A DNA stretch of 63,836 nucleotides, filler included, from Pelomyxa schiedti (GCA_020536535.1; 7 parts of 7 records of this genome joined end to end with filler, not necessarily neighbours in it), one strand, 5' to 3'; positions 1,327 through 24,560 are shown, counted from the first letter of the whole stretch. Numbers and translations: made by a program. Notes: generated from the sequence alone by a model not told the origin.

Positions 1327-4300
1327 TTATAGCACCTTTTGGAGCTCAAACAAGTAGGTAACCATGCTGAGCTTCTCTGGGACTGACATGTCTAAAATGT
1401 CCTGTTCGTCCAGCTGTGTTTATGTATTGGGTTGGTGGGAGGGAGAATTAAGGTGGTGGAGGGATTTGTACAGACCAACTTGGGAACGCCGAGGGTCTCA
1501 GCAGCATCAAATGCGAGCTTGAGGTTCTCTGCTGCGTTTTCTTTTTTGAGGGAGTTAAAGTCCACAAGCTCCGGGTGCTTCTTGTGGATCAGAGCGCAAA
1601 AGGCAAGTCCGTCTTTGAAACTCTACCGGTGTATTTGAGTGAGTACAGAGTTTATTGGAGTTTATTTTGTTGTGGGATTTGAGTAGAGTGGGGTTGGGTT
1701 TGTGGGAAGGAATTGATACCGTTGTGGCATTGGTAATATTAACATCCCGGTATCCAGTTGTTTCGTCCTGGCACCATCGGATAAGTTGTCCAACCTGTCA
1801 ATTTTGTAGTGGAGTGAGAGGCGTTGTGCAGTGTAATCGGGGTGGAACCTTATCAGTTGGCGCCGGTTTCTAGAAAAAGAATGAGTTGGAGGAACGTAGA
1901 AATAGTACATACTCGAGATGGAGTCGGGGGTACTGTGTTGGGCGGCACAGTCTGCGTTGGGCCTACTGATATAGTGGTAGAAATAGCCGGCACTGGGGAA
2001 GGCGGTGTAACTGGTTTCTTTCCTTCTTGTGAAGTCAGTATTGTTGACTGCACGATTTTCTGGGTAGTCAGAGCTGACGGCAAAGGTGACGGAGTTTTGG
2101 TTGGTGCTTTTGGTGTTGCTGCTTTCCTTGGTGTTGTTGTTTGGGAAATGGAACTGTTGTTTGGAGAGGTGAGTTTACCAGTTGGCTTAGCTATGGCCGT
2201 GTGTGGTTGGGTAATGTAAATATCGTTGTGCTGGAACCCTTTTTGGGTGGCCTGCCAGCGTGGTAGTGTTGTTTGTTGATGCAATTTGATTGCTTGGTCT
2301 GCTCTTCTAGTAGAAGGTGAGTAAGTCGGATGGTTTTCGAGAAAGAGAAACTACTGTTGAAGTGCCAGCTCTCGGCGGCTCTCGTAAACAGAAGTTGTTG
2401 CAGTTAGCCTCCCTGGGATGGGCATTGTAGAAGAAAGATCAGAAGATGGTGTTGTCCTGGTTGGTCGCGGAGTAGAAGTGTGTGGATGTATATTGGTTGT
2501 GGTAGGGCGTGGTGTCATTGCATTTCTCGTTGTTGTGGGTAGTTGAGCTCTGGGAGTTACACTTGTTCTGTTAGTGGTGACATGGGGTGTTGTTATAGTA
2601 GTTCTTGTGTTTGTTGGGGTTCTTGGAGTTGCAGTCGATGTTCTTGGTGTCGTTGTGGGTGTTCGTGGGGTTGCTGTTCTTGGAGTCACTGTGGGTGTTC
2701 TAAAGGTGGTCGTTGGTGTTCTTGTTGGGGGAGTGGTTGTTGGCGTTCTGGTTAAGGTGGTTGTTGGGGTTCTTGTTGGAGGAGCTGTCCTTGGAGTTGT
2801 TGTGGGCCTTGGTGTTGGAACTGTGGTTCTTGGAGTGTTAACTTGCCTTGGTGTCACTTCCGGTCTTCTTGGCGTCGACGTGGTTACCGTAGGTGATGAG
2901 GTTACTCTTGTCGATGGTGTTATTCTTGGGGACGGTACTACCCTTGGAGTAGTTGCGGGTGTTGAAACCGTTCTGGATGTGGGGGTTCTAAATGTGGAAG
3001 TGGTAGTTCTCGGTGTAATGGTGGTTCTTTCCAGTGCAGTTACTGTTCTTTGTGATACAGTGGGTGTTCTTGGTTGAGTACTTGTAAGTGACCTTTGAAG
3101 GGTGGTTGTGGTAACTCGCTGTGTAGTTACTGTGGTTCTTGATGCTGGGGTTGTGGGAGGTCTCACCAATGTTCTGGGTATTGGACTTCTAGGTGTAGTT
3201 GTTTCCCGCAGTGATGAAGTTCCCGGTGATGGCCTTGGGGTACCCACTGTGTGTACTGGGGGAGCAGAGTGCGGAGTATTATTGATAATCGGCCTTGCGG
3301 GTGTATGTGGAGAGGCTGCTGTATGAGTTGGGGTTGGGAGCTGACTGTTTGGAGGGCGACGTAAGGAAAGAAGAGAGGAAGGGTCTTTTCCGCGAGTAGG
3401 CGTAATGAAATGTGGTACGGCAGTGGGAGGACGCAGGTGCGACGGTGTTGTAGAATTGAGAGAGGTAGGAGTTCTTGCTGCTGGAGTAGTTCTCGTGGAA
3501 ATGGAAGGGTGCTTTGGGGGAATATGTGGAGAAGGACTACTGGGACGGGGTCTTGGTTCTTCTGAGCTATCCGAGTCTTTGGAGCCGACTTTAGGTTTAA
3601 CTAGGGGAGTTTTTGATGTTCTTGCTGAGGGTACAGTGTGTGCTGCAGTGACAGAACGTACAGGAGGTGATACCTTTGGGAAGTAAGAGAAGCGGCATTT
3701 GCGTTTGTTCACATACCTTGGTTGGTTTAGTAGGGGAACTTAACGTAACAGGGGGAGCCAATTTCTTTGCAGCGTGGATACAGAACTCATCAAACAGGAT
3801 AAATCCTCCATGATTTACATCAATCAAATCGAAAGTTCTTCTTAACGAGTCCCCTTGAAGCGGCTCTAATCCAAGAGTGGTGTACAGCTGATTGAACTCT
3901 TCAAAGGAAATTCTCTTGTCGCTGTTCTGTGGCGTGTCAAAATTCATGCTGCGAGTGTGGGAGGGTACGGTGTCCAGCTGTCTGAATAGTTTTCCGATGT
4001 AGTCGAAATACGCAAGAAGCAGGAGTAAGTGCTTGAACTCACCGCGCTGTACATATCCGTCTCCACTCAAATCTGCTGCTTTGTATGCTCTCATTATTGC
4101 AGCTTTATTTTTTGCATACTGACAAAGTTTGATATGGTTTATTTTTGTTGGATGTAAAAAAAACCTGGGGCATTTCAGAAATGATGACTTTGTCAATTTC
4201 TGCCAAGGACAGGATGTTATTGTGGTTGAAATCTGCGGACTCCCAAAGGCGATTGAGTTCTTCATCAGAGATGACCGGCAGAACAAGGGGTGATCTGATT

Positions 4301-7300
4301 GCTGCTTTGGAGCTTTTTGTAGCTGAGGGGGCAACAGCAACAGAAGAACCCTTTGCTGGAGGTGGAGGAGCAAGTCTCTTAGCCATATGGATGCAAAACT
4401 CATCAAAAAGGATATATCCTCCATGATTGATATCAATGGAATAAAATAAGTTCTCCAATGATTCATCTCCAGTTGTAAAGCCCAGTGATTTGTAAGTTTG
4501 TATGAATTCTTCTAATGAAACCCTCTTATCGGCATTCTAGAGATAATGAGGAAACGTTTGGGGAAAAAGGTACCTTGTCGAGATGTTTGAAGAGTTTCCC
4601 AATGTGATCAAAGTATGAAAGCAACGTCATGAGATACTCAAACTCACACCTCTGGATGTAACCATCCAAGGAAATGTCTGCTGCCTTGTACGCTCGCATC
4701 ATTGCCGCCTTGTTGCTGGCAAACTTACAGAAAGGAAATTAGCTCGGTGTTGAAGGACAGCCAGTCGAACCTCGGGCAACTCGAACACAAGGAGTTTGTC
4801 TATTTCAGCCAATGACAGCTTTCCGTTTTTGTTGACATCTGCCAGTGTCCAAAGCTTCTCAAGGTGCTCCTTAGTGTATATTGGAATTTCCATTCCACGT
4901 AAAATTGCAGTGGTTTTCTGTAACCATTTAAAAGGAGATAAACTAGGAATTATGTAACCTTGAAATAAGGTAATTTCACTGTATGACGTTCAGCCTCCTG
5001 GTTTCTAATAATTTCCTGTAGTTTTACTCGATCCTCGGCCGGCGGTTGAGGTGGAGCAAGTTGTTTTGCCACATGCATACAGAACTCATCGAAAAGTATG
5101 TATCCCCCATTATTTGTATCAATTGAATGAAATAGATCTTCTAATGTTTGCTCTTCCCTTGCCAGCCCCAATGTGTCATAGGCCTCTCGAAATTCTTCAA
5201 AGGATATTCTTTTGTCCACATTCTTTATTATTTGTTTTAGTGTTGAAAGTAGAGTTCTGGTAGAACTCTACCTTGTCCATGTGCTTAAACAACTTTCCCG
5301 CATGATCGAAGTAAGCTAATAAGAGCATCAGATGCTTGAACTCGCACTGCTGGACATATCCATCCCCACTCAAGTCCGCAGCTTTGAATGCCCTCATTAT
5401 TGCTGCCTTATTGCTTGCATACTAAGGAAAGTTACATAATGCCGAAAGGCGTTCTTAAAAGTAGTTCACACTTGGGGAAGTTCGAAAACCAGAAGCCTGT
5501 CGATTTCCGCCAGCGAGAGGAGGTGATTGTGATTGACATCGGCAAGAGACCACAGTTCATTTAATCTCTCATCTGTGTAGGAAGGAAGCGCCAACTTACC
5601 GGCAAAGACCTGTGTTGCATGAGGGGTTAATTTAACATTCTTGGCACATTACATTGTTCTTGGGTTTTGCAGAAGGTTTGGAAATAGTGGGAGCTGGTAC
5701 AATTTCTTTAGGCGGTGGTGGAGGAGCAAGTTTCTTGGCAAGAAAAATGCAGAATTCATCGAACAGTATGAAGCCACCATGGTTTACATCGATAGATTCA
5801 AATAAACTAGCAATTGATTGCCCCTCAGATGAGATATGAAGTGAGTTGAAGGCATCTTGAAACTCTTCAAATGAAACGCGTTTGTCCATGTTCTAATTTC
5901 CGAATAGGTGGCTCATCAAGTGTCTTAAAGGTTACCTTGTCCAGATGTTTGAATAATTTTCCCAGATGATCAAAGTACGAAAGAAGCAGCATAAAGTAGT
6001 CAAACTCACACCGTTGTATATATCTGTCCCTGGAAAGATCTGCAGCCTTGTATGCTCGCATAATAGCAGCTTTATTACCAGCCAACTTGGGGAGTTAGGG
6101 TGAGGAAATGGGTGCTTTTCTGGCGAACCTCAGGCATTTCATATACAAGAAGTTTATCAATTTCAGCAAGAGACAAAATGCCGTTTTTGTTCCAGTCGGC
6201 GATTGACCATAACTTGTCTAGGTGCTCTTGGGTGTAGACTGGAATCTCTAAACCCTTGGAAATCAAGTTGTAGGCCTGCACAAGTAATGTCAGATAAGGG
6301 TAAAATTTGGGGATCTGCAAACTTTCACAGTATGAATAGGTTTCGCAGACTTCGAGTCTCGTTGTTGTAACATTTGTTCCTTAAGTCTTGCCCGTTCCTC
6401 TTGGGGTGGTGGAGGTGGGGCTAACTTCTTGGCAACGTGCCCGCAGAATTCGTCAAACAGTATGTAACCCCCGTGATTTGTGTCAATAGAATTAAATACG
6501 TCTTGCAAGGACCCCTCCTCCTCAAGGGATAGTGTACTGTAAGCTTCCTTGAACTCTGGGAAAGACACTCTCTTGTCCATGTTCTGAATGGGGAGCAGTT
6601 GGTAAGAATATCGACATAGGAAACGATACCTTATCAAGATGCTTGAACATTTTGCCAACGTGCTCATAATAGGCAATAAATAGAAGCAGGTGTTTGAATT
6701 CACACCTTTGAACATATCCGTCACCACTCAGGTCAGCTGATTTATATGCCCGCATGAGAGCAGCTTTGTCGCTGGCAAACTTTGAGAATACTTAGGCTGT
6801 GCTTATTGTACTTGGGTATTACCTGAGGTAGTTCAAAAACAACAAGTTTGTCAATTTCTGCAAGAGAAAGCATGTGGTTCCCATTGACATCAGCAAGGGA
6901 CCATAACTCGTTGAGCCGCTCTTCAGAGAAAGCAGGTAAGTTCAGTGTCTCTCTAAATTGGGTGGGCACCTTTTTTTTTGGTGAGGATGAATATCGTTGG
7001 AGCAAATCAAACCGTTGAGCTTTCTCTTGCAACTTTATGAGTAGTCACAGAAGCAGGATGCTCCTTTGGTGGGGGTGGGGGAGCAAGTTTTTTGGCCATA
7101 TGAATACAAAATTCATCAAAAAGAATGAAGCCTCCGTTATTAGTATCAATCAGCCTAAACTCAGTTTGAAGATCCTCTGAAGGAAGTCCTAGGGTGTTAT
7201 ATGACTCTTGAAACTCCTCGAGTGATACACGTTTGTCCATGTTCTACAGAGCGTAAATGAACTTATATTCATCAGAGAAGCCACCTGGTCGAGATGTTTG

Positions 7301-9105
7301 AAGAGTTTCCCAATGTGATCAAAGTATGAAAGCAACGTCATGAGATACTCAAACTCACACCTCTGGATGTAACCATCCAAGGAAATGTCTGCTGCCTTGT
7401 ACGCTCGCATCATTGCCGCCTTGTTGCTGGCAAACTTACAGAAAGGAAATTAGCTCGGTGTTGAAGGACAGCCAGTCGAACCTCGGGCAACTCGAACACA
7501 AGGAGTTTGTCTATTTCAGCCAATGACAGCTTTCCGTTTTTGTTGACATCTGCCAGTGTCCAAAGTTTCTCAAGGTGCTCCTTGGTATAAATAGGAATTT
7601 CCAGTTTTGATACAGTCACAACTTCTTTCTTTTGGAGATTAGTGTTAGGCAACATAAAGTGAAAGCACACTCTGGGGTTGTTTATGGGTGCTGGTAGATT
7701 GATTGCGTGAGTAGGAACTGGTTCTACATGTTCGGGAGGTGGAGGTGGAGCAAGTTTCTTTGCCATATGAATACAAAATTCCTCGAACAAGATGAACCCC
7801 CCAGCGTTGGTATCAATAGAAGAAAAAATTCTTTCCAGGTCCAAGCCTTCAGTGTCAACCCCAAGGGTACAATATGCCTGTCTGAATTCTTCAAGTGTAA
7901 CTCGTTTATCTAAGTTCTTGTAATATGAGATATAGAAATCGAGTTTCAAACTGTGACCTTATCCAAGTGTTTGAACATTTTTCCGATGTGATCATAGTAG
8001 GCAAGTAAAAGCATAAGATGTTTGAACTCACATCTCTGAACATATCCATCCCCACTCAAGTCTGCTGACTTGTATGCCCTCATCATTGCAGCTTTATTAC
8101 TCGCGAACTTCGTTGAAATGCCATTATTTACAAAAAAAAAAAAAAAAAAAAAAAAAAAGAGAGAGAGAGAAAAGAACCTGGGGCATCTCAAATACTATCA
8201 GTTTATCTATTTCAGCAAGTGATAGGAGGTTGTTGTTGTTAACATCAGCTAATGTCCAAAGTTGTGAAAGTCTCTCATCAGAAAAGGTCGGTAAAGCTAG
8301 CTGATTTACAAATGGAGTAGCCTGATGCATCATCAAATCAGGTTGATAGGTAATAGGAAATATATACCTCCGGGGAAAGGGCGGGGACTTTTTCCTTTGG
8401 AACAGTGTCATCACCCCACGTGTGCACGGGAGGGGGAGGAGGGGCAAGTTTTTTGGCCATATGAGCACAAAATTCGTCAAAAAGGATGAAACCACCGCCA
8501 TTTGCATCAATCCGATTAAAAAGATCTTCAACTGGTTCAGCTTCAGCAGAAAGCCCCAGAGATAGATAGGCCTGCGTGAATTCCTCAAGGGAGACACGTT
8601 TGTCAACGTCCTGCCAAATTCGTAACGGAGTGCGGTTAAAGAACGAAATATAAAATACTTTGTCAAGGTGCCTGAACATTCGCCCGATATTATCAAAGTA
8701 GCCAACTAGTGTCATCAAATACTTAAACTCGTTCTTTTGAACAAAGCCATCGCGGTTCAAATCTGCAGCTTTGTATGCTCTCATAAGAGCTGACTTATTT
8801 GAAGCAAACTTTGGATTGGTCAATATCACAAACAGGAAGAATAGGAAAGTAAACTTGTGGGAATTCAAGTAGAATGACTTTATCAATTTCTGCCAAGGAA
8901 AGCATGTTGTTGTGATTGTTGTCAGCCTCCAGCCAAAGTTCCTTCAGCCTTTCATCAGATAGCTCATCAATCTTGATGGGAACTGCCAGACTCTGCATTC
9001 ACAAAACCAGGAATAAGAAAACCACGGAACGGCCCCGCGTCCCAAAGCCAATAAAGAAAGAAGTGATCGTAGATCCGTTCGTACTTGGTCTTGTGTTGTT
9101 GTCAT
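1327..9105 (-). CDS. Giant multi-exon protein: 8x calflagin-like four-EF-hand units + Pro/Thr-rich linker + C-terminal calponin-homology (CH) domain
   Basis: Eight repeats of LWxxADxNxNxxLSLAEID / [28 protein letters not shown] / DKRxSxEEF / [27 protein letters not shown] at ~3740-9000. In-frame splices lead into ORFs 2351-3712 and 1853-2284, then [44 protein letters not shown]...[15 protein letters not shown] (CH domain, stop at 1327). The start is uncertain: ATG 9105, or an extra exon up to ~9250. Confidence 0.85.
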
Positions 9106-9366: not shown

Positions 9367-10468
<1,102 letters not shown>

Positions 10469-10702
10469 AACGAAAAAAACCAAACCAATCTCATTCACCC
10501 AATAAACACTCACACTCTTCCCTCCCTGTCATGTATCATGACAATGATACTATCCGATCCATTCCTGTTGGTTATCACCACCTCAACAAACGCGAAACGA
10601 ACCCAAAACCAAAATAAAAGACGAAACGCCCGTTCTTCCGAAACACGAAACAAAAAAAAAAAAAACCCCTAGCACGACTGTAGTACCACCACCAACGACA
10701 TC

Positions 10703-13700
10703 ATGTCGAGCACGAGCATAACGCAGAGCGACTTTGAGCGAGGGATGGAGTTCGTGACCAAGTACAAGCAGCAGCTCGAGGACCCGACCGTGCCGCTCGT
10801 GCACATCAAGGTGATGACCAAGGCCCTGGGGTCCAGGCAGGACAGCGACCCCGTCGCCAGGAGGCTGTACAAGACCGTCGAGGCCGCCTTACAGGACGGT
10901 GTGTGTGTGTCCGTGTGTGCCTTTTGGTGGCGACGTCGCTTGCCTCGTGTGACCATTATGGGTGCCTTTGTTGAATTTGGACGAATAAGTTTTGCCACTT
11001 GTGTTTGTTTTTTTTTTTGTTTTATAAGTGATTCCTATGCCTCGTTTTTTGCCTGGAGACGTGTGAGTTGTTATGTCTGGTGTGGAGATGTTGTTATGTT
11101 GGTTAAATTCTTTTCTAGGGGAAAGTGGAGAGGCCCCAGTTGCGGCTGCAGGAGGAAAACCTGTTAAAAAAACAGGAACTACAAGGCAAGCTACTGAGAG
11201 AATGGCCAAACTGAAAGTGGCTTTCAAAATTTTGAGTGTGGACCCAAGAGTGGCAAGAATAGCAGTACGAATGAGCTTTCGAGGGCGAATTAGACTAATC
11301 TTTGTAATGTATTAGATTCTTCAGAAGAGGGAAGGACGTCTCTCCTACGAGGATGTTTTGTGGGCTGTTGGGCCAAATTTCTTATCTCCCAGTACGTTTC
11401 TTTTCTTCTGGGTGCTGTGTGACTTGAACTAGAAAAAAAACCAATGTTGACAGAGCTCCTAAAAGTAAAGGGGCTTATCTCTGCAGCTGCTACACAGAAA
11501 GCTTATGAACTGGTATTTCGATTCCCTCTAACTGTCTCAAATGACATATTTCCCTCTTACCCTCAAGGCTTTGAATTCTCTTCCCCATGTTTCTCCTGAC
11601 GCGACTCCTTTGACCCCAGCTCAGCTTAAAAAACTTCATGAGAAGCAACTTAAAGAAATTACCGAATCTTCCTCGGCTGCCGCAATTACTGGTACAAGAT
11701 TCACCATTGTCTCAGAGTTGCTAATGGAAACAGGAATGAGCCCTGAACTTCTGGAAAAGATTACAGCTTGCTTCACCAGGCTTAAAACAACTGAACTCAC
11801 GAAAGAAGACTTTGGTTTGCTACTACCCCTGGTAAATAGTACCTACATTCTTCATCTCTATCTGATTGACCTTCTACAGCTAAACTTCCGTGCCCACGCT
11901 CTTTGTCACCGGTTCTTCAACAAGTTGGACACTGAAGGGAAGGGCTCTGTGTCCCTTCAAAAAATCGTTGCAATTAAGCTTCTTTCTTCCCTTTCAGACC
12001 AAGATCCCGTTGCTGTGAAGGAGAGCCTTATAAAAGTTGGCTCTGTATTATTTGACGTTGCGGATATTGATAAATCTGGCATGGTTCCCGAAATACAAAA
12101 TATCTCTAACATCGCCCTAAGGAACACTTGAAAAATCGGAGTTCAAGTTGATGCTCAAAAATAGTGGCCGACAAGACTTGGTGCAAGCTGTTTTCCATCA
12201 TAAAAAGTCACTCACAAAGGAAGAATTTTTAGAAGCGTTGAGGAATCTAAAATTCGAAGCCCCAGGTACATTTTCATATCACCAGAATATAAAAGGCTTA
12301 CTTTCAAAAAAGCACCAGCCCCAGAAAAGCCAAAAAGCCCTGCAATAAGCACAGACGACATAAGCGCCGTATCATCAAAACTCGCCGAAAAAGTTCCAGA
12401 GACACAAGTTTCGCAAACTCCAATACCTGCAAACAAATCTTCACCAGGAGCCAGTGGGAGTGGTGAGGCTGTGCTGACTGGCAAAAAGGCCTCTTCCTCT
12501 TCATCCTCTTCATCGTCTGCATCACCAAAACTTAAAGTTGTTGTGAAAGAGTCTGCCACTGCAACACCAATACCAACAATTAGCAGAGGTAGTGCACCTC
12601 CAACTCCAACTCCCACACCCACACCAATGCCAACTATTTCTAGAGGCGCACCTTCCACCCCAACACCAACACCAACGCCAACTCCAACTCCAACGCCAAT
12701 GCCAACAATTTCCAGAGGGTCGCCAACTCCCACCGCAGCTCCAGTTACACCCACTGTGGAGGTAAAAAAACCAGAGAGTTCTAGCTCTAGTTCGAGTTCC
12801 AGCTCTACTCCAAAAGCGGCTACACCAGTTACTCCCGTAACTCCCCCAGTTACTCTTCCCGTAATTTCCCGAGGAGCACCCAATCCGCCTGCAGTAGTTC
12901 CCCCTGTTGTTGCCAAACCTGAATCAAGTTCCTCGAGTTCTTCAAGCTCTTCTTCCAGTTCAGAACCAGCTCCCAAGCCAGCTGCTCCAGCAACCTTACC
13001 ACCTGTTACCATGCCAGCCAAGCCAACCCTCAATTTCCCAGTAATCGCACGAGGATCTGCACCACCAACACCCACACCCACTCCCACGCCCACCCCTACT
13101 CCTACACCTTCTCCAGCATTCCCTACAATTGCCAGAGGAGGTGCACCTCCCACTCCAACGCCTACTCCAGCTGTATCCCCAACTCCAACACCCACACCCT
13201 CTGCCTTCCCTACCATTTCTAGAGGAGGGCCCCCACCCACTCCCACACCCACAGTCACCCCCACACCTACCCCAACTCCTACACCAACTCCATTTCCTAC
13301 AATAGCCCGTGGAGGTGCTCCGCCAGTTCCCACTCCCGTAACACCCACTCCAGCTCCCAAAGAATCCTCTTCTTCCTCCAGTAGTTCGTCCTCCTCTTCA
13401 GAACCAGCCCAGGTGAAGCCTGTAGTCCCAGCAGTGCCTGTACCCGTAGTGACTCCTGCACCAGCAGTTGCTCCTGTCCCTGCTAACAAAGTTTCTAGCT
13501 CAAGTAGTTCCTCCTCTAGTAGTTCCTCCAGCTCAGAGACCCCAGCCAAACCTGTGGTTGCAACACCTACTGCTGTAGTTGTTCCAACACCGGCTCCTGT
13601 ACCCACTCCTGCGGCTAAGCCTGCATCTTCGTCTTCTAGCTCTTCTTCTTCCTCGGGTTCTTCCTCTGAATCCCCAGCTCCCACTCCGGCTCCAGCTCCC

Positions 13701-15716
13701 ACAGCACGTCCCGTTGTCGTTCCAACTGCAGCAGCAAAAGCGGCTTCCTCCTCTTCCTCTTCTGGTTCCAGCTCCTCTGGGTCTGGATCCGAGAGCTGTG
13801 AGTAACACTTTTCTTTCAGTATCACACAAGCACAATTGACTTTTCTCAGCTTATACACCTCCCCCTGTGGCAAAACCGCTGGTGATCCAAGTACCCTCAA
13901 GTGAATCCTCCTCTGAATCAGAAGGTACACTCCTTTTTATTCCCGAAGTAATGGCTTGGCAGAGGAGGAGCCAATGTGCGATAAAGGGCACATTCTTGTT
14001 AGTGTACCAACACCCCAGTTGCGCCTAGAGAATCCTGGCTACACCCTTGGGTTGATCTATGACATAGAAAGTTAGTGGTTAATGTACAACAGGTTCGGTT
14101 GCAATCTCTGTGGTCAAAATATTCGTATTTCACCCACTACATTCTCCCTGCATTGCCGTGCTTGTGGGTTGTATTTCCAGCCAACTTTCACAAAAATTAA
14201 TTCTCATCAGTTATGATGTATGCTCCCAATGCAAAGATTCCACTGGAGGAAAGAGAGCAGGAAAGATGCCAGCAACCGCATCTCCAGTGTCAATTGCTCT
14301 TCCTGGTCTCCCACCAATAGTTGTTGGTACTGTCTCCCTCTAGCACGAATACCACTCAATTATACTTAGACGAACGAAATCTTCAGTGCGCCTCTGGGCA
14401 CCCTCTTCAATGCAAAACAATAGAGCAACTAACCATGGAACATTCCGCCTATACTTATGGATTCAACTGTGACGAATGTAGATCCGCAAATTCTCGACCA
14501 AACCGTTCTGCCCATTGTACAATATGCCAGTAAGTACAGTTTTTATTTTCTTTCCTCATTAACCTATTTCACAGATATGATTTATGTCCGAATTGTACAA
14601 ACCAGAAGATTGAAGCAATACGCCAAGTTTTACAGCAACAGCAACAGCAGCAACAGCAACAACAAATAATCGCACTACAGCAACAGCAACAGGCGCAAGC
14701 GCAAGCACAGGCACAGGCACAAGCACGTGCACCTTCACAGGCACACAAGAAACCAGCTTCCAGTCTTTCTACTTCCAAGGCTGGCCCAGCCCCAGTTGCC
14801 TCTGGCTTCAGGACAACGGAAAAGACCATTTTCGCCCATTTGTCATTTTCACCTAGCAAGCAGTTCCATTTGGTTTGTACCTACCGTCACCAAAATGTTG
14901 CCTTATTTCACTTCACAGAATGGAGCAGCCAAGATAGCGGAGGGTAAAATTATTCTCACACCGGATGTGAGCAACCAAAAAGGTTCATGCTGGTTGGAAG
15001 TGCCTGCAGCTCAAGTTCTTTCTGGATTCTCCACGACATTCAAGTTATACTCATCGTTTTTGCCTGCTACATATTCATATTCTCATCTTTTATAGAACAA
15101 GAGTTAAAGGATTTGGAGCCGACGGCATAGCGTTTGTTATACAAGCGGAGGGTACAGCTGCCATTGGAACACCTGGTTGTGGCCTTGGAGCAGGTTTGTT
15201 CTTCCCTTTTTTAGTCCCTTCTCACCGCAATATCCAGCTGGTATTGAAACTTGGTAATACAATTTTTTCTTCCTCGAATTCTTTCCCTAACCCGATTCAG
15301 TTTCATGGTTGAAATGGATATGTATTGCAATGCCGGTATGGGAATCCCCATTAACCAAAAAAAAAACCTATTTCTTACATTTTCCAAAAGATTTCTGTGG
15401 AGATCCCAACGGAAACCACATTGCTGTATTTTTGGACATGTATTCCATATCCAACAACCACGAGGATTGCATCGCTGTCACCCGGCAAATTCCAGACCTT
15501 CACGGAGACCACGAAGTGAGCATATCTTACAACCCGGCATCACATACTCTCAATGTATCACTTGATGGCCGGCCTGTTATAGCCAATGCCTCTGTTGACC
15601 TGGAGAAAATAGCCCCTGATGGTCCCTCAGGGAACCTCTGTGTGGGATTCACGGCCGGAACCAGTGGCCTATCTCAGGCACATATGATTACTGCCTGGAA
15701 ATTCGACAAACTATGA
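10703..15716 (+). CDS. Multidomain protein: EF-hand region + Pro/Thr/Ser repeats + two Cys/His Zn-finger-like modules + polyQ/QA + L-type (legume-like) lectin domain
   Basis: EF-hand-like loops DTEGKGSVSLQK and DIDKSGMLEKSE. In-frame GT-AG splices link to ORF 12471-13805, to two CxxGHxL...CxxC...HCxxCxYDxCxxC modules (~13970-14600), and to GADGIAFVIQ / VEMD / DPNGNHIAV / VGFTAGTSG...HMITAWKF lectin motifs. Confidence 0.75.
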
Positions 15717-16087
15717 TAGTAACATCAGCACCATTATTCGGATATTTTCCTTTCCTGTTTTGTTTGTTTCTCTTAGAATTAGAAATAGAACAACGCCATG
15801 TCGATCACAGTTGCAATTCCTTTAAAATCTTCAACGACAACTGCGTACCGAAAGAGGACTCCTTTTTTTTTTAAATTGTCTCTATAGCCTCGTCGCCGCA
15901 CGACCGATCTACCGGTACGTCGAGATCCACCCCGTCACCATCGCCCTTGTTTTGTTGTCGTGGTTCGCATATGGCGATACATATTTTTTTTCCTGTCACG
16001 CGACCGTTTGCGTGTTTACGCCTCGTTCATGTTACTTTGCATATGTTTTTCTAATTTACTGTTTTTCTCTTTTGTGTTGTGAAGAAG

Positions 16088-17082
16088 ATGGTCCTGTCCC
16101 ACAAGAAAAAATCGTCCGCCATTAATGGGAAGCCCACCACCTGCGCCATTGGACGCAGAGGAGAGCGTGGCCACCATGTAACCAAGCGCCAGCCACCAAT
16201 GCGCCATAACCGCAGAAAGGCTGTATGTTTTCCATCCCTTAAACTGACTCTAGTGCTTATTGCAAATATTATATTTTATCTATTTATAATGTACTGGTGT
16301 CATGACACTTACCTTTAAAAATACACTAGCACAACGGCCCATTCCGCAAATTGGTCAAGGAGGTTATTTTCGATATCACAGGCCGTGCCCCTTACGAGAA
16401 GCGAGTAATGGAGCTTCTTCGAAACGGTTTTGATAAGCGAGCACTCAAGTTCGCCAAGAGAAGGGTAACTCTAACCACCCCACACCCACAAAACCCGTAA
16501 TACACGAATGCTAATCTGAACACAATACAGCTTGGCACTCACCTCCGCGCCAAGTCCAAGAGAGAGGTTCTTGGTATTGAAGTCCAGAAGGTCCGTCTCG
16601 AGCGCCAGAAGCTCCGCGAGGCCCACGACCTTGCCCAGAAGAAGGCAAGGAAGGAGAAGAAGGAGCGTGAGGCCAAGGCCAAGCTCGACAAGAGGGCCGC
16701 CGCCGCAGCCGTCGGCGCCGCCGGAGCCGGAGCAGTCTCTGGTGCCAAGCTCAGGAGGACCAAGCACAAGCTCGCCGAGCAGAAGAAGGAGCAAGAGAAG
16801 AAGAAGGCCGCAGGACCCACATCGGCACTCCCGCTCGCCCCAGCACCCGGCTCAGTGCCCGGAGTTGTCATCGAGAAGGAGAAACCGGCCGCTAAGCCCG
16901 CTGACAAGCCAGCAGCCAAGCCAGCAGCCAAGCCCGCTGAGAAACCAGCCGCTGAGAAGAAGGCTGCCCCGGAGAAGAAGGCTGCCCCGGAGAAGAAGCC
17001 CGCACCCGAGAAGAAACCAGCAGAAAAGAAACCAGCCCCGGAGAAGAAGGCCGAGCCCAAGAAAGATGAAGCCAAGTCATAA
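16088..17082 (+). CDS. RPL36: 60S ribosomal protein eL36 with long C-terminal extension, 3 exons, 273 aa
   Basis: Exons 16088-16222, 16330-16464 and 16531-17082. Motifs [40 protein letters not shown]. Confidence 0.93.
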
Positions 17083-20206: not shown

Positions 20207-21932
20207 ATGGACGCCAGCACCAAGGACGCCGCCACACCGGCGGCCACGAGCGCGGCGGCGGCCGTAAGCAGCAGGGGGGACGAGGACGAGGAGGGGGAGG
20301 CGACGACGATCGAGCGGGGCCCGCACGCGTGGGGGCTGTCGTGGGGGCAGATAGCGGCGGGGCTGGGGGGGCGGCCCTGGGACCCCGCCCCCGCCCTCGC
20401 CATAGCGACGGGCCTGGTGACCCCCATGATGACGACGACCGCGGCGGCCACAGACGGGGTGCCCAGGAGGCGGCTGGTCGAGTCCACTGACAACTGGGCC
20501 GGATGGAAGCTACAGAAGAGGGTATTGCATTCGGAATATATGTGTGTTGCGGGTGGTTGCGGTGCCCGAATGGGGAGTGGCTGATTTGGTGTTGTTGTCA
20601 ATTATATGCTGTTCTTGTTTTGTATGAGCAACCCAGACTGATATCCTGTGTTTCAGGTACACATGGAACTAATCCGGGAGTACGGGGACTGGGCATGTGG
20701 GTGGTGCTGGACCCTTGGTGAAGGGGGTGAAGCGGGAGTCATCAAGACGTGGTGCTGCAACGTCCACAGCTTCAAGGACAATGCGGAGGAAAATGTTGTT
20801 GCCGCACTCACAGAATGGAGGAGTTGGTGCCTCGAGCTTAGTGAAATCTTCGCCAAACTCAGGTATCTACAAGAAACAAAAAGGGTAAACCTAATATCAA
20901 AAACAGAAAACAATTAGCATGCTATGACCCAGCCCAAGCAACTGCGAGGGCCGCATCCCACTTGTTACCTCTTGTAGTTAAGTGGACTGGAAGCCAAGAT
21001 GCCTGGTACCACACCTTTGCTGTCATTCTGTCGTGGTATCTGTCATCATTCCTGCCCGAGAAGGATGTTCAGGATCTAATATTGACCACAATGGGCGGCC
21101 GGTTTGAGAGCTGGTCCAGCCCCGACAGTGTTACCGCCCAGGCTGTTTGTGAGGACGTAGGACGAGCAGTTGGGGCCAAGCTATCTCAAGCACAAAGAGG
21201 TTAGAATGAACACTCATTTACTGAAGTTCTGACCAAATATAAGAGGCACAATCCAAAGCCAAAGCCGCACAAATAGACTCACTCTCTGACTGGCTTCGAA
21301 TAAGGAACAGCTTCTCGTGGTTAATTCCAGAGAAAAGCACACTACCCACAGCCGGCCGCGATGGCCATGTGGAATACATCACCACGCATGATGCAAAAAG
21401 AGACCCAGCAAGAGCAACAAACATGATGACGGCACTGAGCCAAGCGAGGGAAGCTGCTGCCAGGGGTGTTCCTCTCACATTTGAACTGATATCAACATGG
21501 CAGCAGACAGTTCTAGGGACAGCCACAGTACCGAAGTTCAGAACCACTGATGCTTTTGCCAAAGAGGGTTCTGAGAGGTACCCTTACACAGCAACCACAC
21601 AAGCACAGTTCACATCAGCTCTCTCACAATCAGAAGGCACAAGCAACTCCGCAGAATCAACAACAGCATCCTCAGCATCAGCACCATCACCATCTGCAAG
21701 GCAACTTGGAACCATTGCAGGGGCAGCCAGGGCCTATCTGGATGTGTGTTTCTTCCACCCATTTGAGGATGGCAATGCCAGGTGTGCCAGGCTGGTTCTG
21801 GACTTCATACTGCACAAAGGGGGGCTGAGAGTGACCAACATGGAGCCCCTTGTGATGCCGTGGTACGCATCGGACACCAAGGCACCACCATCGTTCTTGC
21901 AGGCCCTTCTTGCTTCTGTCTGTTCCCAGTGA
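20207..21932 (+). CDS. Fic-domain protein of bacterial (actinobacterial-like) type, about 4 exons
   Basis: Fic motif YLDVCFFHPFEDGNARCARL near 21756. N-terminal YGDWACGWCWT...WCC...VVAALTEWRSW block. Three GT-AG introns (~20521-20657, ~20862-20917, ~21200-21246) restore the frame. Confidence 0.85.
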
Positions 21933-22166: not shown

Positions 22167-24560
22167 TCACAAGGGAAGGCCAAGCCATAGTTTTACTTCT
22201 GGAGCCAGTGCGGAAGAGTTTCTGCCGGCGAGTGCCTCGCGGCACTCCTGCATTGTGGGAGAACGGTACCTGTGCATGGTGTACGTGGCGATGTGTGGAG
22301 ACATAGTAATCAGCGGCATGAAGTGCTTAAGAATCATGTCCCCGTCAATGGCCGGGTGGTACCGGCTCAGGATAACCTGCCACCCTGCCAGGTCAATGCC
22401 GAAGACCGCTTGGGGGCACCACTTTTGCATCATTTGGATAATCTGTTGCGCGCGGTCAGTGCCGGGTGCCGGGTTTTGGTGTTATTAATAGTAGTACTTT
22501 ATATGTGATACTTGATAGAGTGAAGGGGATTTCATACATCTGTCAAAGGGATGTCGAAGTGATAAAGGAGCCACTGTGCACACCGGTTCTTCTTCCTGGA
22601 TAAGAGGCAGAACAAGAGGTAGTTGTCATGAACTTTGATGTCTGTGTACTGCAGGTTGAACTTGCAGACAACCCACTTAACAATCTTGCTGCAGAATACT
22701 AGGCCCCTGCTTGAAGGAAGGTGTTTTGAAATAAACTCTGGGGTCCACAATGATGCCGCTGAGGAGCCAACACGTCGGTAGAAGTGCTGGAGAGACTTCA
22801 AGTCACTTTTCATGAAGTAATCCACAATTTTCTCATATAACTCTAGGTCGGTATGCAGTTGGTAGGCAGGGAATGCGTCCAGCAGCACCAACATTGAAGA
22901 AGGACCGCGGTAAAATTGATGGAGTGCTGATAGAGCGTCGTGAATAGAGGTGTCACTTATTGCAGAAGGATTTGAGAGGTGTTGCAGGAACCATTTCAAC
23001 CCCGCTGCGCCGATATCGGTATTGAACTCCTGACATACACCCGGCAAAGTGTCGGCACTCTCTGCTGTGAGATTAAGTGTATCCATCACGTGGAATGTAG
23101 CTTCGAGCCACTCGGCAACTTCAATGTTGTTGTACTGGAGTGCTCCAATAAAGGCTATTCTGATGTCCAGTGGCTGGAGAGTGACCCTGGTTGACAACCA
23201 CTTTGCAAATGAAAGCGCCCTTTTATTTGATGTGGAACAAACGGAGGAAAATGTGGCTGGAGTTGGGGTGAAGCTCTTCTCGGTGGTGAGCCACTGAAGA
23301 AATTCCACATCTCCCACTTCTTGGCAGAGACGATTATAAGTATCCTCGGCCGGTATAAGAGGAGAGGTTTTCAGTGCCCACTTGGCAACGTCAGCGTTAG
23401 TAACTCCTGAATTGAGGATGTAATCAGCCACTCCAAACTCAATAATATAATCTTCAAGCCATCGGATATCTTCAACAGAAGTGCAGTGTCTATTTGTCAG
23501 CAGGTTTGCTATAACTCTCTCCCTGTTAAGATCGAGAGAGAATTTCCCAGCAAACCATTGGTAACTTCCCGGACTCAAACCTCTTGCACACACCGCCAAT
23601 AGGGCAGGCCCAACCCCGTTTGGCAGGTTACTCAAGTTGTATTTCTCCAATATCCACTTGAAAACTTCCATGTTCCCGGTAAACATAGCCGACTTCATCG
23701 GCGTGTACAAGAGCCACAGCCCTTCGTTCACAGAATCCCTCTCAGGAACTCTCATCACACACTCCAGGAACCACCTCACCGCCTTCAAATTCCCAGACTC
23801 ACAAACCTTCTCCATGATCCTGTGTGCCCCGGACGAAGACTTAAGATACACCCTCACCTTCTCTGTGAGTGTATTTCCCCTCTCTTCCATATTGTCCATG
23901 TCACTCTCAGACCCACGAGGGAAAGCATTCCTCCACCTCACCACCTCCCGCCCATCCCACAATGCCGGAAGCGACCCAGCGCCACTGCCGGAACCACTAG
24001 CCCCCGCAGAAGAACTCCCATAATCGCCGCCGCCCAGCATAGCGGCGGCCTCATCCACGTGCCCGCCAAGACACAGCCCAAGAACCACGGCGCTCGCCTC
24101 CTTCACAGCCCTCAGCCTCTCGCCCTCCATGTGCCACCCCTCGGCGATCTTTTCGCCCACCAGCCGGTCCCTGTACTTCCTGTTTAGGATCCACGCGACG
24201 CACGCCGGGGCCGGGGCCCTGGCCGCGGTTGCAATCGTGCGGTACGTCCCCGCGTGGGTCTGGTCGTCCTCCTCCTCGTAGGCGTCGGCGGCGGCGGCCT
24301 CGGGCGCAGTCGCCCTGGAGCAGGCGAGGGCCACGAGGGGGAACAGTGCCTCGGCGACGCGGAACAGGCCCAGGCTGCGGGCCCAGGGGTAGTCGCGGCG
24401 GGCCCCGCCGGTCGGGTGGACATGGGGGCAGCTGCAGCCGCAGGGGGCGCTGGCCCTGTCGTCGGCCAGCCACCCGGGCAGCACCACCATGTCCCACACA
24501 ACACGCGAAACATGCAACACGTGGCTGGCGCGCAGGGAGAGTGGTCGCGGTCCCTCTGTT
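22167..24560 (-). CDS. Degenerate ankyrin-like helical-repeat protein of a lineage-expanded family; 5' end uncertain
   Basis: 662-aa ORF with repeated CxxGNLxxxxWL / FLQWL / VAEWL motifs and the VSRVVWDxVV N-terminal motif. An intron (~22446-22540) links it to the terminal exon 22167-22445. Confidence 0.7.

Follow-up and report, generated by a model that had tools for sequence, protein, structure and literature searches.

A single expressed gene of the archamoeba Pelomyxa schiedti lies at positions 10703 to 15716 (plus strand) of the window analysed here, the whole 63,836-nucleotide stretch, filler included, joined from records of assembly GCA_020536535.1. Its predicted product combines an EF-hand region, a long disordered linker, two zinc modules and a complete L-type (legume-type) lectin domain in which the predicted metal and sugar ligand motifs are intact. 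The protein is best read as cytosolic, and its lectin domain probably derives from the cytosolic, PNGase-type branch of L-type lectins. Judged from this domain composition, a role as a Ca2+-regulated sensor of glycans exposed to the cytosol is plausible.

An expressed gene of 19 exons

The window is eukaryotic DNA with short introns, and sequence searches, family scans and fold predictions were run exon by exon; the joined protein was used in local scripts for the stop count and for hydropathy. The joined exons give a coding sequence of 4002 nucleotides and 1333 codons, running from the ATG at 10703 to the TGA at 15714-15716, and its sole stop is the terminal one. These bounds match exactly those of a first-pass annotation of the same DNA, which had proposed a gene joined by in-frame splices. 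The exons are as follows.

10703-10898 (+), exon 1, with the start codon
11119-11264, 11316-11391, 11433-11512, 11568-11831, 11880-12078, 12122-12265 (+), exons 2-7
12313-13797, 13850-13924, 13963-14050, 14093-14167, 14211-14326, 14370-14529 (+), exons 8-13
14575-14872, 14919-15043, 15096-15193, 15238-15253, 15301-15335, 15391-15716 (+), exons 14-19

We mapped contigs from one DNA run and three single-cell RNA libraries to 10400-16100. The RNA libraries had been polyadenylated in vitro (PMC10579272), and their contigs reveal neither strand nor level. Joints in the RNA contigs support 13 of the 18 introns, which, together with a frame that stays open over 19 exons to one stop, bears out the proposal of a single spliced gene.

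10899-11118, 12079-12121 (GC-AG), 13798-13849, 13925-13962, 14051-14092, 14168-14210, 14327-14369 (+), introns seen as RNA joints, first half
14530-14574, 14873-14918, 15044-15095, 15194-15237, 15254-15300, 15336-15390 (+), introns seen as RNA joints, second half
11265-11315, 11392-11432, 11513-11567, 11832-11879, 12266-12312 (+), five 5' introns of 41-55 nucleotides predicted from GT-AG ends and frame

One spliced RNA contig (14210-15719) takes in the second zinc module, the Q tract and the lectin domain, and further contigs chain from 12879 to 14508; exon 8 is covered at 12418-12625 and 12879-13797. The RNA also confirms the GC-AG intron at 12079-12121, which splits the EF-hand loop, and a micro-exon of 16 nucleotides (exon 17) within the lectin domain. 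The latter is seen in three RNA runs as 15 extra letters, CTGGTATTGAAACTT, between the joints 15193 and 15300, and the reading frame is preserved solely when the micro-exon is included. The 43-nucleotide intron 14168-14210 is spliced in run X2 and kept in one X1 contig, with a frameshift as the consequence of its retention; this could be unspliced precursor RNA or regulated retention.

At the 5' end, the next in-frame ATG lies at 10814 and would give a protein of about 1296 residues; the N-terminus reads MSSTS from the first ATG and MTKAL from the second. An RNA contig has its 5' end at 10766; the letters GTACATGGG in front of it seem to be left over from a template-switch oligo. The upstream neighbour is a proteasome-alpha gene whose RNA ends in an A-run at 10479, about 220 nucleotides before the ATG, and the downstream neighbour is the gene for ribosomal protein L36, with a 5' exon end at 15914.

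No RNA contig from the three libraries bridges 11264-12022 or 12216-12417. As the five 5' introns were placed from reading frame and splice signals, the physical link of the EF-hand part to the rest of the gene is predicted from these. This would also be expected if two adjacent genes had been fused in the model, a 5' EF-hand gene (10703-12265) and a 3' gene for linker, zinc modules and lectin domain, with the predicted intron 12266-12312 as the false joint. We regard such a fusion as highly improbable, given that the frame is open through all 19 exons, that exon 8 has no in-frame ATG before 12645, that no RNA 3' end is listed between the two parts, and that all five predicted introns are GT-AG introns of the local size.

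A complete L-type lectin domain with predicted metal and sugar ligands

The lectin domain occupies the 3' end of the gene, where it was recognised by Pfam, by a local profile and by PDB sequence matches.

14828..15713 (+), L-type (legume-type) lectin domain, tail of exon 14 plus exons 15-19
15115..15135 (+), GADGIAF motif, from the profile alignment
15238-15253 (+), micro-exon coding for A-GIET-C, from RNA
15308..15419 (+), predicted metal-binding stretch VEMDMYCN-A-D-FCGDPNGNH, with the intron 15336-15390 inside it and a signature Cys two residues before DP

By itself, the last exon reaches 34.7 bits with Pfam Lectin_legB (PF00139), for which the cut-off is 26.3. Exons 15 and 16 gave weak, in-order matches to PF03388 and PF18483 in the Pfam scan; the PF18483 matches are partial because the domain is split across five exons. 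Against a local L-type profile of 218 positions, built from 17 homologous domains, exons 15, 16, 18 and 19 align to positions 19-57, 65-92, 101-109 and 113-216, and GADGIAF, GCGLG and VEMDMYCN-ADFCG-DPNGNH fall in line with the family consensus. An assignment to the ERGIC-53/VIP36 type found no support, as PF03388 reached 19.5 bits, on one exon, below its cut-off of 24.

None of the six predicted metal ligands (the Glu and Asp of VExD, Tyr, Asn, Asp-Pro and His) is missing, nor is the Asp/Gly/Asn sugar triad, and their spacing is the canonical one. Residue roles were assigned after concanavalin A and the legume lectins, which we take to hold for this domain, and the Asp of GADGIAF is presumably the sugar-binding Asp of L-type lectins. 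The earlier description of a legume-type lectin domain with ADG, VExD and NH motifs therefore stands, with Lectin_legB above its cut-off and GADGIAF, VEMDMYCN and DPNGNH intact.

Sequence matches of the last exon in the PDB are legume lectins and lectin-like inhibitors, the best of them being the alpha-amylase inhibitors of beans, lectin-like proteins that have no sugar-binding activity. The beta-sandwich might thus serve, as in those inhibitors, as a protein-binding module in a sugar-inactive scaffold, nuclear or cytosolic; the Q tract and the zinc modules, which resemble the KKT2 kinetochore domain and the ZZ domains of p300 and p62, would in that case hint at transcription or chromatin. The metal and sugar ligands are typically gone from lectin-like proteins without sugar binding, and the retention of the full set here makes this explanation distinctly unlikely.

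Probable kinship with the cytosolic PNGases

A HMMER search of 1.84 billion protein representatives with the last exon as query returned 81 proteins at E<=0.001. Most of these relatives, including the highest-scoring ones, are bacterial surface proteins, typically with several lectin domains. Eight are eukaryotic PNGases composed of a transglutaminase core and an L-type lectin domain, often with PUL, from sources that include Heterostelium, Tieghemostelium, Balamuthia and Pellita. PNGases with a legume-lectin domain have already been published for Dictyostelium and Naegleria (PMC3502110). P. schiedti has a PNGase of its own on contig C590 (L015:5300-7500, minus strand), where exons for an L-type lectin, with GADGFAF, VEFDTYCN and DPNDNH retained, come after a transglutaminase core. 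A cytosolic L-type lectin domain as such is already known from PNGase, and the first-pass annotation erred in its premise that characterised L-type lectins are secretory or luminal, because the cytosolic PNGases of Amoebozoa and Naegleria, and that of Pelomyxa itself, contain the domain.

Two cysteines tie the window domain to these enzymes. The Cys two residues before DPNGNH is found in all eight PNGase-type domains vs 1 of 69 others, and the Cys in GCGLG in 5 of 8 vs none of 69; the window domain has both. These shared signature residues make the strongest case for an origin of the domain in the cytosolic branch, and we infer its descent from there. We also computed a lectin tree from the last-exon region (78 rows, 103 columns). 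It places the window domain with three dictyostelid PNGases at 83% support in the SH-like approximate likelihood ratio test (SH-aLRT), which is not significant; the PNGase rows fall into two groups, and a PNGase is the row with the shortest tree path to the window domain. Covering the C-terminal half of the domain, the tree is too short to resolve where the domain comes from.

The window gene is not itself a PNGase: neither a transglutaminase core nor Rad4 was matched on any of its exons (Transglut_core and Rad4 profiles), and the PNGase core of the genome lies on another contig. None of the 81 lectin relatives has a zinc module or a canonical EF loop, and a scan of JGI metagenomes gave four weak partial matches, none with the combined architecture. 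One match of 1488 residues without a signal peptide proved to have an architecture unrelated to that of the window gene. The combination of EF-hand, linker, C1/KKT2-like modules and lectin domain is thus apparently a new, lineage-specific architecture. No ortholog was found among the 81 matches either, the best identities being 33-46% and none above 46%.

Two zinc modules of a family expanded in the genome

The first-pass annotation had described two ZZ/C1-like Cys-His modules. Two modules are indeed present between the linker and the lectin domain.

13963..14232 (+), zinc module 1, CDKGHxL ... FGCNLC ... HCRACG/YDVCSQC, exons 10-12, aligned with paralogous modules
14370..14596 (+), zinc module 2, CASGHxL ... 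FNCDEC ... HCTICQ/YDLCPNC, exons 13-14

Both follow the pattern C-x2-GH-x-L ... GF-x-C-D-x-C ... HC-x2-C-x-YD[LV]C-x2-C, with eight Cys/His ligands. Intron position and phase are identical in the two, and we conclude that they arose by tandem duplication. Pfam C1_2 (PF03107) scored 15.3 bits on module 1 and 19.1 on a paralog, against a cut-off of 26. Pfam ZZ (PF00569, cut-off 21.4) scored 13.3 bits on the YDLCPNC knuckle of module 2 (ZZ positions 28-39) and 8.7 on a contiguous paralog. Assignment to Pfam ZZ was rejected, the modules being below threshold, lacking the C-terminal His pair after the last CxxC and having an N-terminal Cys-x3-His in its place. "ZZ/C1-like" is hence fair as wording, but the modules fall below both Pfam cut-offs.

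Exon 13 gave nothing in a PDB sequence search or in the protein atlas. For the contiguous paralog, about 36-41% identical to exon 13, an AlphaFold2 (AF2) model was obtained with a predicted local distance difference test (pLDDT) score of 85.6. This model, which represents the paralog rather than a module of the window gene, has the KKT2 central domain as its closest fold, with a template modelling (TM) score of 0.64-0.69. The next-closest folds are the C1 domains of RAF1, PKC and Munc13, DC1 (1v5n) and the ZZ domains of p300 and p62, all with Foldseek E > 0.01. A profile of the module family matches KKT2a (6tlx) by sequence at E 0.043. Paralog fold and family profile point to a two-zinc module of C1/KKT2-like type.

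A genome scan with the module returned nine further loci at E<=1, and for six of these the match was at E<0.03. In three serpin genes (contigs C1020 L017, C837 L019 and C1037 L021) the module directly follows the start Met, with no signal peptide; their products would be intracellular serpins headed by a zinc domain, an unusual fusion. Another locus, on contig C821 (L018:331-2109), has at least four modules and a Pro/Thr/Lys linker followed by a C3HC4 RING (zf-C3HC4_3, 53.9 bits), and its product is likely an E3 ligase. The occurrence of the family in signal-less serpins and with a RING points to an intracellular module. Expanded in the genome and fused to a lectin domain, a RING ligase and serpins, the module may represent a targeting domain that has yet to be described.

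EF-hand region, linker and Q tract

The remaining features of the gene lie 5' of the zinc modules, with the exception of the Q tract.

11568..11831 (+), exon 5, four-helix segment in a single-sequence AF2 model (pLDDT 57.6)
11880..12265 (+), EF-hand pair, exons 6 and 7, broken by the GC-AG intron 12079-12121
12063..12141 (+), canonical 12-residue Ca2+ loop DIDKSG/TLEKSE, split by the intron, across the RNA-confirmed splice 12078/12122
12313..13797 (+), exon 8, disordered Pro/Ser/Thr/Ala linker of 494 residues (P 24%, S 22%, T 14%)
14623..14725 (+), Q and QA repeat tract, from sequence and translation

Across the splice 12078/12122, DIDKSGTLEKSE fits the 12-residue EF-hand pattern D-x-D-x-[DNS]-G-x-[ILV]-x-x-x-E and is a canonical EF loop, the only one in the gene; the preceding loop, DTEGKGSVSLQK, has Lys at position 12. 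Pfam EF-hand_6 gave 17.9 and 16.9 bits on the pair and another EF-hand match reached 15.7, all below the cut-off of 25, so that the EF-hand assignment depends on the one loop. The nearest PDB sequences include CaBP, GCAP1 and calcineurin B (E 0.016-0.5), the last two as weak matches at E 0.04-0.5. EF-hands had been annotated as calcineurin-B/recoverin-like. The canonical loop and the weak Pfam signals uphold the first half of that statement but not the second, since there is no Gly2 as in calcineurin B or the recoverin-type neuronal calcium sensors, and a single canonical loop in place of four EF-hands, exons 1-5 having no Pfam EF-hand match nor any other Pfam match.

Exon 5 offers a lead at most: it is possibly a degenerate EF-hand pair or an EH-like domain. 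Its look-alikes in the protein atlas, found with a language model, are EH-domain clusters (score 0.93). Its identification as an EH domain (PF12763) was rejected, with no Pfam match at E<=10, the locus missed in the PF12763 genome scan unrelated PDB matches and a model of low pLDDT, on which the fold search was meaningless. No paralog of exon 5 was found in the genome.

Exon 8 corresponds to the PT/poly-Ser region of some 500 residues reported earlier, and the Q/QA tract was likewise located. In the linker, where V is also among the main residues, we counted eight [MFLI]P[TV]I[SA]RG motifs, seven by regular expression and the eighth, MPTISRGAPS, read from the translation; seven poly-Ser runs are flanked by K/E.

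Targeting signals and cellular location

In agreement with the earlier reading, we found neither a signal peptide nor a transmembrane helix. A local hydropathy script detected no hydrophobic N-terminus from the ATG at 10703 or that at 10814, both being followed by charged, hydrophilic sequence. It found no transmembrane-like segment either: the highest Kyte-Doolittle mean over 19 residues is 1.61, in a Pro/Val low-complexity stretch that is unable to be a helix. Read from the sequence, the C-terminus is FDKL, which fits neither the KDEL nor the SKL type of signal. The luminal lectins of ERGIC-53/VIP36 type (PF03388) are encoded by separate genes on at least five other contigs of the genome.

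The first-pass annotation had further argued that EF-hands and zinc fingers speak for the cytosol. The zinc modules do, being of intracellular type, but EF-hands alone are no argument, as luminal EF-hand proteins exist. A cytosolic protein is the best reading because this is one gene with a real L-type lectin domain, no signal peptide or transmembrane helix, and intracellular-type zinc modules.

PT-rich and poly-Ser linkers are a typical trait of O-glycosylated, secreted proteins, and the linker of exon 8 resembles a mucin stalk. Most L-type lectins are extracytoplasmic, as are the top-scoring relatives of this one. The protein might reach the outside or the lumen by way of an overlooked first exon, another start codon or an unconventional route, as an extracellular or phagosomal lectin on an O-glycosylated stalk. 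We hold this to be very unlikely in view of the hydrophilic N-terminus from either ATG, the absence of a transmembrane helix, the distance of about 220 nucleotides between the upstream RNA end and the ATG with a cDNA 5' end at 10766, and the two-zinc module family, which otherwise occurs with a RING and on signal-less serpins.

Proposed function

P. schiedti is an anaerobic archamoeba that lives in an obligate consortium with one methanogen and two bacteria, and it carries these prokaryotes in vacuoles, free in the cytosol and around its nuclei (PMC10579272). The first-pass annotation had suggested a Ca2+-regulated glycan sensor, for example for damaged vacuoles or endosymbionts. In other systems, cytosolic lectins and EF-hand sensors have been described at vacuoles that are damaged (PMC7564661; bioRxiv 10.64898/2026.06.18.733164; bioRxiv 10.64898/2026.01.30.702722).

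From the domain content and by analogy with such systems, we tentatively favour, at somewhat less than an even chance, a cytosolic glycan-reading scaffold for Ca2+-coupled marking of damaged or microbe-containing compartments, a task like that of the galectins and their adaptors in animals. Its lectin end would bind glycans accessible from the cytosol, candidates being the luminal glycans of ruptured phagosomes or symbiont vacuoles, the surface glycans of cytosolic symbionts and retro-translocated glycoproteins. The zinc modules and the repeated linker motifs may recruit partners, and the EF-hand could couple glycan reading to Ca2+. The most specific form of this proposal is more doubtful: a surveillance device in one piece, in which the lectin domain would see luminal or microbial glycans exposed by the rupture of a phagosome or symbiont vacuole, or those on symbionts free in the cytosol, the EF-hand would sense the Ca2+ signal that goes with it, and the modules together with the eight F/M-P-x-I-x-R-G motifs would recruit repair, autophagy or tethering machinery.

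Several of the observations above weigh against a Ca2+-coupled damage sensor. The RNA gap leaves the EF-hand part attached by frame and splice signals; the gene has a single canonical EF loop, with Pfam scores below cut-off; and the composition of the linker is that of secreted proteins. Among the lectin relatives, bacterial surface proteins score highest, and the grouping with dictyostelid PNGases in the tree is not significant. As no ortholog was found, conservation cannot back the function. Finally, kinship with the PNGases fits a role in endoplasmic reticulum-associated degradation (ERAD) at least as well as damage sensing.

A cytosolic ERAD adaptor is therefore the main rival, although one we consider rather improbable. 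Here the lectin domain would bind retro-translocated proteins through their high-mannose N-glycans, or bind free oligosaccharides, and pass them on to ubiquitin or proteasome factors in the manner of the Fbs F-box lectins or of the PNGase lectin arm, with Ca2+ incidental. The signature residues shared with PNGase lectin domains, the PNGase as nearest row in the tree and the presence of the zinc module family on a RING E3 all suit such an adaptor. So does the failure to detect an FBA-domain gene in the genome, which is a weak negative: genome scans for galectin and FBA genes were blank, but so were the controls. Scans with PF00139 and PF18483 missed or barely found the window locus, and because a known locus was nearly missed, the exon-wise genome scan is insensitive. 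Against an ERAD adaptor, Pfam scans found no ubiquitin-, p97- or proteasome-binding domain in the protein, the Pelomyxa PNGase already has its own lectin domain, and the EF-hand and the long multivalent linker would be left unexplained. Damage sensing and ERAD are both more likely than a secreted protein, a sugar-inactive scaffold or a two-gene artefact.

L-type lectins outside PNGase are regarded as proteins of the secretory pathway or the cell surface. A lectin domain with intact ligands in a signal-less scaffold or signalling architecture suggests that the cytosolic branch has been reused beyond deglycosylation. For P. schiedti, a cytosolic glycan reader would be a concrete candidate for how the cell distinguishes partners, prey and damaged compartments.

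Other features of the window

On the minus strand, at 3597-8886, lies a tandem array of at least four EF-hand genes with a common 18-residue motif (open reading frames (ORFs) 3597-4466, 6290-6727, 7410-7949 and 8338-8886), for which only three short EF-hand proteins were matched in the large protein database. The lectin gene has a calflagin-like neighbour. Also on this strand are a putative Thr/Pro/Arg-rich open frame of 453 residues (2351-3712) with TPRT and TTTP repeats, opposite a region of strong GC skew, and a single-exon ORF of 662 residues (22532-24520), on the contig of the lectin gene, that is 100% identical to Pelo_15611 of P. schiedti. The Pelo_15611 family has at least 13 Pelomyxa paralogs, some with ankyrin-repeat Pfam matches, and an x-x-W-[LF]-L helix motif recurs in the ORF. 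On the plus strand, a Lys/Ala/Pro repeat ORF (16855-17082) with AAPEKK repeats, resembling a histone H1 tail, lies just past the ribosomal protein L36 gene, and an ORF at 21369-21932 has the motif HPFEDGNARCAR, which by eye resembles a Fic-domain signature.

Comparison with known systems

The closest known counterpart of the lectin end is PNGase of Amoebozoa and Naegleria, with its C-terminal beta-LL domain and often PUL. Like the predicted window protein, it is cytosolic and has an L-type lectin domain with conserved GADG, VEFD and DPNGNH, and both signature cysteines are common to PNGase-type domains and the window domain. Unlike PNGase, the window gene lacks the transglutaminase core, Rad4 and PUL, and has instead EF-hands, a long disordered linker and two zinc modules. 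With ERGIC-53, VIP36 and Emp46-47 (PF03388) the domain shares the fold family and the Ca2+-dependent sugar-binding residues; those lectins, however, are anchored in the membrane as type I proteins, have a signal peptide and keep the lectin domain in the lumen, whereas the window protein has neither signal peptide nor transmembrane helix.

The zinc modules share with C1, DC1 and ZZ domains and with the kinetoplastid KKT2 central (Znf1) domain the eight Cys/His ligands C..GH.L ... C..C ... HC..C.YDLC..C, but they score below the Pfam cut-offs and lack the C-terminal His pair of ZZ. ZZEF1 joins an EF-hand and ZZ-like zinc fingers in one intracellular protein, as the window gene would; it has DOC/APC10 and CUB-like domains and no lectin.

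In its proposed logic, that of a cytosolic lectin which detects misplaced glycans and recruits machinery, the window protein would resemble galectin-3, -8 and -9 with their autophagy adaptors, the Fbs proteins (FBXO2/6/27) and the Dictyostelium discoidins (PMC7564661; bioRxiv 10.64898/2026.06.18.733164). The lectin folds of these proteins are unrelated to that of the window domain, and recognition and recruitment are spread there over several proteins. If the one-piece surveillance device is real, it would do the work of the galectin-adaptor axis with another lectin fold.

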